Shown: piece after piece, positions 19,501 to 22,500 of the stretch | How the letters are laid out: each line of letters opens with the position of its first letter | Numbering within the stretch: the first letter of the stretch is position 1 | Assembly (NCBI RefSeq): GCF_039654945.1 | Contig: NW_027361924.1 | Coordinates: forward strand, 10,540,001-10,604,000 | Length of the DNA stretch: 64,000 nt | Source: Dendrobates tinctorius | Lineage: Eukaryota | Direction of reading: 5' to 3' | Made by a program: the position numbers and the translations under genes | Notes under the pieces: generated by a model | Told to the model about the DNA's origin: nothing | Seen by the model: only the letters and a program-made list of their open reading frames with translations | The model's database searches: none

Positions 19501-22500
19501 TCATCTTTCAGGAATTTTGCAACACGCCGCACATAACTGCTTTGTGTATGAATCCGCTAGCTTAGTGTTGCACGTCGGGCATCTCCTCATTCTTTTTCGG
19601 TAAAAGGAGCCGGATCTTAAGGGAGTCCCTTTATCCTAATACAAAGGACGGAACATTTTCTCCTTTTTACTGAGTGACCACTAAAATGTGGAAAAGCAGG
19701 CGCTATGGGGTTACTTACATTGGCCAAGGACTGCTCGACTGGTGCTTCTGAGCGGGGTCGGATAAACCTCCATGGTTCAGACTGTGCACACCACCCATTC
19801 TGTGAGTACCCTTTTAAACGGTGTTACCTTGTCCAGGTGGCCTTCAGATTACCCCCATAGCTCTTTCATGCATTCCCGGTTGGAACGCATGCTGTGCCAC
19901 CCCAATCGGAAGTGCCCTCTAAATCGCCAGTGTACATCCTCGAAAGGCGTCCGACCAGAAACGCGTTCCACATGTGAAAACATGCTCACTCATGCGACCT
20001 GCAGCGGTGTGGAGCCGAGAGCCCTCCGGAGAGGGCAGCGGCAATGTCGGGAGCTCCCCTGCTCCACCAGCAAGCTGAGGGGACCCCTGCCTAGTGAGGT
20101 ATCAGTGACGGAGCCTCTTGACCGCAGGAAGGGAAGAGATCCAGTCCCCTCCGATCCCGCTGAGCCCCGTAAGTATTGCGCTCCTCTTGCGCGCCCTGTC
20201 CTGCTAAGGACACGAAAAACTCTGGAGGTGAGGCAGAAGGGGGGGCTTATTAACCTCTTGTGTGTTTCCTGTCCCTAGAGGATAAATAGGACTACATTTT
20301 GCGTGCTGTCATGTGGGACGTCCTGAGGAAACATAGGTATAGTACAATGCTAAATATTTCACTTCTTACATTACTTGAGTGATATCTATTGTAATTTCTA
20401 CAATAGTTCAGAAAACGGACAGTATTGTCCTCCATACAGTATTATGGGCACCACATAGTGCTCCATACAGTATTATGACCACCATATAGTCCTCCATACT
20501 GTACTATGCGCACCACATAGTGCTCTATACAGTATTATGGGTACCACATAGTCCTCCATACAGAATAATGAGCCCCATATATTGCTCCATACAGAATAAT
20601 GAGCCCCATATATTGCTCCATACAGAATAATGAGCCCCATATGCTCCATACAGAATAATGAGCCTCATGTATTGCTCCATACAGAATAATGAGCCCCATA
20701 TATTGCTCCCTACAGTATAATGAGCCTCATATAATGAGCCCCATATAATGCTCCATACAGAATAATGAGCCTCATGTATTGCTCCATACAGTATAATGAG
20801 CACCATATATTGCTCCATACAGTATGAGCCCCATATATTTCTCCATACAGTATAATTAGCACCATATATTGCTCCAAACAGAATAATGAGCCCCATATAA
20901 TGCTCCATACAGTATATGATGGGCCCTGTAAGATGTTCCCTATATGATGGTTCCAATATATTGTTGCAAACATTAAAAAAAACCCTCTCCTCGCTGGCTG
21001 CTGCTGCTCTGGACTCCTCAGCGTCACAGTCTTCTGGCTCTCTGCACTGACTGTTCAGGCAGAGGGCGCACACTAGTCACGTCATCACACCCTCTGACCT
21101 GAACGTCAGTCAGAGGATACAAAAGACACCACAGCAGAGGAACAGGGAGAGGTGAGTATTGCAAGTGCCGGGGCCCAGTTGCAGGCACTGGCACCGGGCC
21201 CCCATAGCACGCCTGTGTCCCCGAAGGCAAGCAACCCCCCGCCTGCCCAGGGCTCCAGCACTTGCCTGGGTGCCGACACCGACCCTGCAAGGGTGTACAC
21301 AATCACGGAGCTCAGTGGTTCGTACCGTCTACTTTGGCCAAGCTCAGCGATTGGCTGCAGCACCGATGTTGTGACACTGGAACCAGGGATGGAGAAGAAG
21401 ACTTAGCTTAATGGTTTACACATCTCCAAGGTCTATGGGTAGAAAGAGTCTGAAAGTGTCGTCCACCCTCTTTATAATTGGTGCCCTGTGACAGCCGCCA
21501 TTTTGGGCGTCCCCGATATAAAGCTTTGAAGGCCTGTCCCACATTTATGACGAGTGACAGAACGTTTCTTGTACCTAGCGAGTAGCCATCACCGTCCTTG
21601 TTCTTCTGGGGCCTGAAGAAGGTCAGCAGGTTCTCGTAGTAAAAGGGAAGCCTCACGCTGGTCATGGGGACCCCGATCTCACGGAAATATTCCTCAACTT
21701 CTCCTTTTCCATCACAATACTCCACCTCCAGCTTTCCCCCCGTCAGTTTCTTCACATTCTCCAGGCCGCTGAAGATCACAATCTCCAGGGCGAGACGCTT
21801 GGACAGATCTGCGATCAGTTTACCCTGAAGAAATTTATAAAAGTGTTATCAGGATCCAGTGCAGCACTCCTTACATGAACCAGAACCAGGAGGCTCAGGA
21901 TGAATCCCACATCATGCGACAGTCTAGTAATGGCGCCGTTACCTGTTTGACTTCTTTCTCCTTGCTGAAATGCTCCACGTAGTTGGTGACCAGGAACGCC
22001 CCATACGCCCCTCTTAGGGCGGCCTCCAGGCTCTTCTCATCGTCCAGATCTGCGTACACGACCTCCGCTCCGGCCTCCTTTAGCTTCACAGCTGCCGGTT
22101 TGCTGGTGTCCCGAGTCACCACCCTGACCTCAAAGGTGCCATCATCCAGGAGAGCGGCAGCGACCGATCCGCCCTGAGCTCCTAGGAGAGAAAGCACAAG
22201 ACATGGTGGACATTAGCACCACAGCCAGACATCTGGAAACTTTGCCATCCAGAAGTTTGGGAAAGCCGAGGGACGACCCTGTAAATATTCACCATCAGTC
22301 CTGATTATACCGGGACAACCCCGCTTACCAAAACAGACACCAGGGGGCGTCCCAGCACCTTTTCCCTGGAGTTTAAGTAGTTTGAAAAGCGACCCGCCTG
22401 CCATTATAGGTGCGGCTGACACTTTTTTAACCAAATCATAATTTGTGATATTTTGAAATGTGGCAGATCTATTTAGTTTTGTCCAAAAAAACCCCTAAAA

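Follow-up and report, generated by a model that had tools for sequence, protein, structure and literature searches.

HSCARG, the product of human NMRAL1, is treated as a non-catalytic NADPH sensor with a conserved Ser/His/Lys cleft. Among its NmrA-like relatives, the PCBER/PLR/eugenol-synthase group depends on the Lys. Structures of the HSCARG mutants R37A and Y81A are on record (3DXF and 3E5M, by their titles), and a literature search on these two mutants returned nothing relevant; the HSCARG papers that we consulted list no contacts in the cleft. Duplication of NMRAL1 together with positive selection has been described in other frogs (PMC11342244). Here, we analyzed a 64-kb stretch of DNA (from here on, the window), the host of which is the poison frog Dendrobates tinctorius. 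Using exon-peptide search and self-comparison, we found that the window carries three NMRAL1 genes in tandem, all on the minus strand, which we refer to as copies A, B, and C. The original prediction for this DNA had proposed that copy A, in which Tyr replaces His at residue 129, had switched from sensor to enzyme, and had considered that the DNA could come from a chemically defended frog, which was borne out. Based on the comparisons described below, we give an about even chance to a different reading, in which copy A binds NADP(H) but has diverged from the other paralogues, with changes in its cleft and a function shifted from that of the canonical sensor, and in which Tyr-based catalysis is unsupported.

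Copy A and its residue 129

The window contains zero ambiguous bases (N). Explicit gene models gave each of the three copies five coding exons of 40, 239, 250, 191, and 180 nt with GT-AG at every intron (in copy A, 8 of 8 splice sites are canonical). Each 900-nt coding sequence (CDS) has an intact frame and encodes a protein of 299 aa with the N-terminus MADKK, and coding identity among the copies is 92-95%. The copy A model is identical to a D. tinctorius RefSeq protein, nmrA-like family domain-containing protein 1 (P0001), while copies B and C each match, without any difference, a further RefSeq protein of the same name in this species. Two further NMRAL1 copies are located on the same 11.6-Mb contig, giving a genome total of at least five. 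The features of the three genes are as follows:

29331-13396, minus strand: copy A gene, 5 exons, 299 aa
29292-29331, minus strand: copy A exon 1, residues 1-13 and the first base of G14, with a GT donor after it (gene model)
21943-22181, minus strand: copy A exon 2, residues 14-93, with the Gly motif, R37, Y81, and V82 (gene model; RNA contig coverage)
21575-21824, minus strand: copy A exon 3, residues 94-177, with S112, Y129, and K133 (gene model; joined to exon 2 in RNA)
21705-21722, minus strand: copy A codons 128-133, GAG TAT TGT GAT GGA AAA, E-Y129-C-D-G-K133 (unchanged in the letters, the gene model, and spliced RNA contigs)
13822-14012, minus strand: copy A exon 4, residues 177-240, with M185-H186-M187 (gene model; words in four runs)
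13396-13575, minus strand: copy A exon 5 and stop codon, residues 241-299, with F246 (gene model)
44768-50554, minus strand: copy B (P0003), 5 exons, 299 aa, L-H129-F-D-G-K at 48700-48717
54629-58650, minus strand: copy C (P0002), 5 exons, 299 aa, L-H129-F-D-G-K at 56580-56597

The copy A motif GAGTATTGTGATGGAAAA has a single match in the window (21705-21722, minus strand), and CTGCATTTTGATGGAAAA has two (48700-48717 and 56580-56597, both minus strand); by chance, no occurrence of either is expected. The motif reading underlying the original prediction, i.e., E-Y129-C-D-G-K133 in copy A and L-H-F-D-G-K in copies B and C, is therefore correct, as is its statement that copy A keeps S112, the Gly-rich motif, and R37 in a 299-aa frame. 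Alongside Y129, copy A has G11/G14/G17 (GxxGxxG), R37, Y81, S112, and K133, and it has M185-H186-M187 where copies B and C have L-D-G. Copy A also has a further ATG in frame, 33 nt ahead of its annotated start codon (region 29292-29375).

Because copies that are 92-95% identical in coding sequence can mislead assemblers, Tyr129 might have been an assembly or sequencing artefact, or codon 129 might lie in a paralogue chimera. However, a 340-nt RNA contig, present in each of two runs of one D. tinctorius study, joins 22050-21942 to 21823-21593, omits exactly the 118-nt intron 2 (GT..AG, minus strand), has 0 differences from the window, and ties the TAT codon to ten other A-specific codons, among them 70, 81, 82, 91, 92, 122, 128, 130, and 136. 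The introns flanking exons 2 and 3 of copy A had zero coverage in these spliced-contig data. All words sampled from copy A exon 4 were recovered (share 1.00) in four runs of this study, and large D. tinctorius DNA runs also carry exon 4 words. The depths of the copy A contigs were similar to those of neighboring paralogue pieces; the RNA evidence consists of assembled contigs and is uninformative on expression level or tissue. Copy A is transcribed and spliced, and because the spliced RNA contigs carry TAT without mismatch, Tyr129 is not an assembly error. Together with the DNA runs and the identical RefSeq model, these observations refute an artefact as far as public data reach and leave it with a negligible probability. 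The two checks named with the original prediction, i.e., the presence of Y129 in reads and the transcription of copy A, therefore both had a positive outcome. Copy A shows none of the marks of a pseudogene (broken frame, lost splice sites, no transcription).

Several other contigs map to this region. Loose contig ends at 21575 match exon 4 of copy C and not that of copy A. Copies A and B have the same final 48 nt of exon 3, in which copy C differs at two bases, and short contigs at 21575 are therefore uninformative on copy A. In a contig extending into exon 2 (22183; X19 and X21), 27 nt match annotated exon 1, followed by TCTG versus CAAG past an internal AG; this divergence may represent an alternative 5' exon or acceptor. 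In run X1, which we guess to be RNA, a contig of a depth of ~4 covers intron 3 beside exon 3 (21367-21568) with 8 differences in 202 nt and is pre-mRNA or DNA carry-over. Finally, a search of short transcript-derived proteins with exon 3 returned nothing above 70% identity.

Copy A matches the Pfam family NmrA (PF05368) with E = 9.3e-58 over residues 4-278 and HSCARG chains with E = 2.9e-110. Its alignment to human HSCARG is collinear over 296 residues with His129 opposite Tyr129, and the numbering is therefore common to the two proteins. An AlphaFold model of copy A built with a 127-row alignment (predicted local distance difference test score [pLDDT], 96.8) superposes on HSCARG-NADP (2EXX_A) with a template modeling (TM) score of 0.97 and a root-mean-square deviation of 1.2 Å. 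In this model, S112 closes strand 108-113, while Y129 and K133 are in the first turns of helix 128-142. Judged by motif spacing and secondary structure, the Ser-Tyr-x-x-x-Lys of copy A would be at the places of the canonical triad of short-chain dehydrogenases/reductases (SDRs). With respect to the family motif S...H-x-D-x-K, copy A keeps S112, D131, and K133 and has Tyr instead of His129. Based on the presence of GxxGxxG, R37, and Y81, copy A is predicted to retain NADP(H) binding. Residue 82 adjoins Tyr81, the residue mutated in 3E5M and, as read from the fold, sites 82, 129, 187, and 246 would line one pocket of the cleft beside the nicotinamide. Residue 154 (~21645, 48640, and 56520) is F, S, and C in copies A, B, and C, respectively, and is also altered in the Lithobates copy with Asn129 described below (S to C); this may be another variable position of the cleft.

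Among the best 120 vertebrate homologues, residue 129 is His in 112, Asn in 6, and Tyr in 2, in agreement with the original prediction that His is the normal vertebrate state. The six proteins with Asn129 are three Ranitomeya proteins and one each from Anomaloglossus, Lithobates pipiens, and Rhinophrynus, while Tyr129 is found in copy A and in a single paralogue from a hylid, Dendropsophus ebraccatus. Thus, Tyr129 is rare but not unique to copy A. In a wider set of 130 sequences including representatives to ~33% identity, His129 is present in 102, K133 in 128, S112 in 118, and Tyr129 in 3 including copy A. By these counts, His129 is a deep hallmark of this NmrA-like branch and not the result of a vertebrate loss of the catalytic Tyr. 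The closest non-HSCARG structure is that of KstA11, an enzyme whose structure includes both cofactor and substrate, and its residues at the aligned site are P-H-F-E-T-K. Because KstA11 is an enzyme with His, His at 129 is no marker of a non-enzyme, and Tyr is not the route of this family to catalysis. The conservation of S112...H129-x-D-x-K133 to ~33% identity and the His of KstA11 argue against the original assumption that His129 is a "dead" vertebrate version of the catalytic Tyr.

Origin and evolution of copy A

In protein trees, the dendrobatoid copies of this subfamily form one well-supported clade with an unresolved inner order. The Asn129 proteins of Ranitomeya and Anomaloglossus (from here on, N-type) form their own clade, in which five replacements are fixed relative to the His129 (H-type) proteins, i.e., W82L, H129N, G187K, Y246F, and E247G. 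Copy A differs from the H-type at four of these five sites (V82, Y129, M187, and F246; overlap p = 4e-4), and it has the exact N-type state only at 246, while 247 is unchanged. At the codon level, copy A and the Ranitomeya N-type gene share TTT at 246, where copies B and C have TAC (two bases different). They also have in common GGG at 122 (G122), TCA at 287 (S287), and the base at position 1 of codon 187. A tree holding copy A with the N clade had a likelihood of +1.96 over the free tree (approximately unbiased test, p = 0.58). The per-exon identities of the tandem copies look mosaic, which suggests gene conversion among them. From the shared sites and codons, it appears reasonably probable that copy A descends from the Asn129 class and, if so, the path at codon 129 would have been CAT to AAT to TAT (His to Asn to Tyr). 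Under a second organism label, two contigs at least 95% like copy A (window positions 21648-21769) encode K-L-E-V-Q-N-F-D-G-K (X1) and K-L-E-V-P-Y-C-D-G-K (X7). At codons 128-130, Q-N-F and P-Y-C bridge the states of the N-type and of copy A. From the P-Y-C contig, the Tyr-Cys pair is also present on another haplotype or in another species, beside the Asn-Phe form.

The Asn129 copy of L. pipiens (P0051) nests among ranid H-type genes with 99% support and has a long terminal branch. It carries W82L, H129N, and Y246F, which are the same replacements as in the dendrobatoid N-type proteins (P0004, P0005, and P0009) and arose independently of them. This overlap of three of the five sites has p = 0.007 with residue identity not counted in. 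These data suggest that positions 82, 129, and 246 behave as a coupled set that changed together in frog NMRAL1 duplicates, and that the His-less copies of ranids and dendrobatoids are a recurring functional class.

Copy A has evolved rapidly. Its terminal branch is 0.14-0.17, compared to 0.02-0.07 for its neighbors, 0.014-0.033 for the Ranitomeya N-type, and ~0.1 for the Anomaloglossus N-type. Three-taxon estimates for the copy A branch gave 0.052 nonsynonymous (dN) and 0.046 synonymous (dS) substitutions per site and a dN/dS ratio (omega) of ~1.1, while omega was 0.3-0.4 for copies B and C. Lineage-unique nonsynonymous and synonymous changes were 26:6 in copy A versus 15:13 in copies B and C together (Fisher p = 0.028). 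In Tajima relative-rate tests with six outgroups, replacements in copy A were 3-6-fold those in copies B and C, and against the Ranitomeya Asn129 copies (three outgroups) the excess was ~2.5-3-fold, with p values overall ranging from 0.02 to 3e-6. The replacements are clustered, with 8 adjacent pairs versus 2.5 expected (p = 0.001). The omega of ~1.1 is not significantly above 1 and is compatible with relaxed constraint or with a mix of constraint and positive selection. In 1266 aligned nt of non-coding flanks, 50 substitutions and 10 indel events are unique to copy A, while its CDS (897 nt) has 0 indels versus ~7 expected from the flank rate. The frame of copy A is therefore maintained, and copy A is not a freely decaying pseudogene. 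In neutral simulations with substitutions alone, 69% gained a stop codon and ~31% stayed open.

In the reading that we favor, copy A keeps the fold of HSCARG as well as the residues that determine NADP(H) binding, and it would most likely come from a His-less Asn129 class that evolved more than once in frogs. Asn to Tyr129 would be one nucleotide step (AAT to TAT) in a lineage already without the hallmark His. V82, E128-Y129-C130, H186-M187, and F246, which are at or beside sites altered in His-less copies, are remodeled, and the function of the cleft would have shifted under relaxed or diversifying selection. The following observations weigh against this reading. The synonymous distance between copy A and the Ranitomeya N-type is 0.15 and larger than that from copy A to copy B or C (0.09-0.11), and protein trees place copy A with copy B or C, although with weak support; therefore, descent from the N-type either needs gene conversion between tandem copies or is wrong. 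Moreover, 8 of the 28 replacements unique to copy A (A34V, H129Y, F130C, D186H, Y224C, Y246F, P280L, and F285L) are at sites at least 90% conserved in vertebrates, and these together with an omega near 1 also fit a simple loss of constraint. Copy A could be a redundant duplicate drifting toward loss of function, in which Tyr129, like many other changes, is tolerated or mildly damaging and brings no new role. The rate excess over its paralogues, the replacements at the highly conserved H129, F130, D186, Y224, and P280, the two large intron insertions described below, and the open frame in ~31% of the substitution-only simulations would all agree with this explanation. We nevertheless consider it rather unlikely, because the indel-free CDS and canonical splice sites, as well as spliced RNA at depths like those of neighboring paralogue pieces, speak against it, and because the replaced sites of copy A are still less conserved than average (p = 0.025) and the replacements fall on sites that define the N-type.

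The sensor-to-enzyme switch originally proposed would make S112-Y129-K133 a working SDR triad and copy A a reductase that uses NADPH and acts on carbonyls, quinones, imines, or alkaloids. The proposal is right in that S112...Y129-x-x-x-K133 is formally complete, with a modeled placement where the SDR triad sits, in an expressed protein with a maintained frame. The Rossmann determinants, R37, and Y81 are kept in a fold that superposes on HSCARG-NADP, the nearby residues 128-130 and 186-187 changed together, in line with the clustering of replacements, P-Y-C at 128-130 is found on a second haplotype in runs of the other organism label, and the host is a poison frog. However, the triad is formal by sequence and model, and the premise that His means non-catalytic and Tyr catalytic fails on KstA11. 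The likely ancestral residue, Asn, cannot act as an acid, and with a probable Asn ancestor site 129 was therefore probably not under catalytic constraint; omega is ambiguous. A direct H129Y change in a sensor is also probably not what happened, given the derived states shared with the Asn129 class and the coupled changes at 82, 187, and 246. The link to toxins is not specific, as NMRAL1 expansions are common in frogs and the other Tyr129 copy is in D. ebraccatus, which is not known to sequester alkaloids; our literature search found no paper tying NmrA-like genes to poison frogs. Overall, a switch of this kind appears improbable, and we see only a slim chance that a His-less lineage, by placing Tyr at the SDR position, gave rise to a new NADPH-dependent oxidoreductase or small-molecule binder acting on dietary alkaloids or xenobiotics.

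As a lead, the His-less class that arose in parallel is of more interest than the enzyme switch. The frog NMRAL1 paralogues are natural experiments in which His129 changed to Asn or Tyr with changes at 82, 187, and 246, which in part occurred twice independently, and whether this coupled set acts in cofactor sensing, ligand binding, or catalysis is directly testable. Among them, copy A is a natural Tyr variant from a species with much RNA-seq data and a known alkaloid physiology. Should copy A turn out to be active, it would clearly exemplify a regulator that became an enzyme or reverted to one; otherwise, copy A is an ordinary fast-evolving duplicate.

Insertions and repeats in the window

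Copy A is lengthened by insertions in introns 1 and 3, neither of which is present in the other copies. The insertion in intron 1 is a degenerate remnant of a long terminal repeat (LTR) retrotransposon with weak Pfam matches to a zinc knuckle, an integrase core, and an integrase C-terminal domain, in which stops break the frames. In addition, large tandem arrays occupy much of the window:

22965-28560, plus strand: degenerate LTR-retrotransposon remnant, copy A intron 1, with no counterpart in copies B and C (self-comparison)
14465-20338, no strand assigned: ~5.9-kb insertion, copy A intron 3, with no counterpart in copy B (self-comparison)
1-6031: array of 86 bp x 71
6918-9659: array of 20 bp x 142
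30674-32758: array of 44 bp x 41
33231-37408: array of 40 bp x 104
40593-41374 and 59341-61351: 23-bp arrays in two places
62178-64000: 52/101-bp array

A 31/62-bp repeat family is present in intron 3 of copies A and B (20423-20916 and 46498-47252, respectively) and, in inverted orientation, upstream of copy C (61365-61763). In Ranitomeya imitator, the 52/101-bp satellite recurs with ~90% identity at a distance of ~9.4 kb downstream from the N-type gene (L001:26479-27067). In this R. imitator locus, an NmrA gene is upstream and the satellite in common with the window downstream; in a synteny comparison with this locus, we found no flanking single-copy gene in the 64-kb window.

Comparison with known NmrA-like proteins and SDRs

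Human HSCARG/NMRAL1 (PDB 2EXX, 2WM3, and 2WMD) is 59% identical to copy A in the structural alignment, and the two proteins have GxxGxxG, R37, Y81, S112, D131, and K133 in common. They differ in that HSCARG has His129 (Tyr129 in copy A), Phe130 (Cys130), Asp-Gly (His186-Met187), and Tyr246 (Phe246). Also, human NMRAL1 is a single-copy gene, whereas D. tinctorius has at least five copies, among which copy A evolves fast. Classical and extended SDRs resemble copy A in having a Rossmann fold, a Ser ending the fifth strand, and a Tyr-x-x-x-Lys opening the next helix; unlike these proteins, copy A is in the atypical NmrA-like branch, the usual motif of which is HxDxK. The fold of copy A is also that of KstA11 (5F5N), CtdP (7UF8), triphenylmethane reductase (2VRB), QOR2/YtfG (2ZCV), SimC7, and PCBER/PLR/eugenol synthase (TM scores of 0.74-0.88). 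These solved NmrA-like enzymes match copy A in profile comparisons with E = 2e-72 to 1e-8 but are only 17-26% identical to it.

The N-type paralogues of R. imitator (P0004 and P0046), R. variabilis (P0005), and Anomaloglossus (P0009), together with the independently derived L. pipiens copy (P0051), are like copy A in having no His129, in having F246 (with the same TTT codon), G122, S287, and changes at 82 and 187, and in their tandem setting beside H-type copies. Copy A differs from them in having Tyr instead of Asn at 129, Val instead of Leu at 82, and Met instead of Lys at 187, in keeping E247, and in the added C130 and H186. Unlike copy A, the N-type copies have no rate excess in relative-rate tests.

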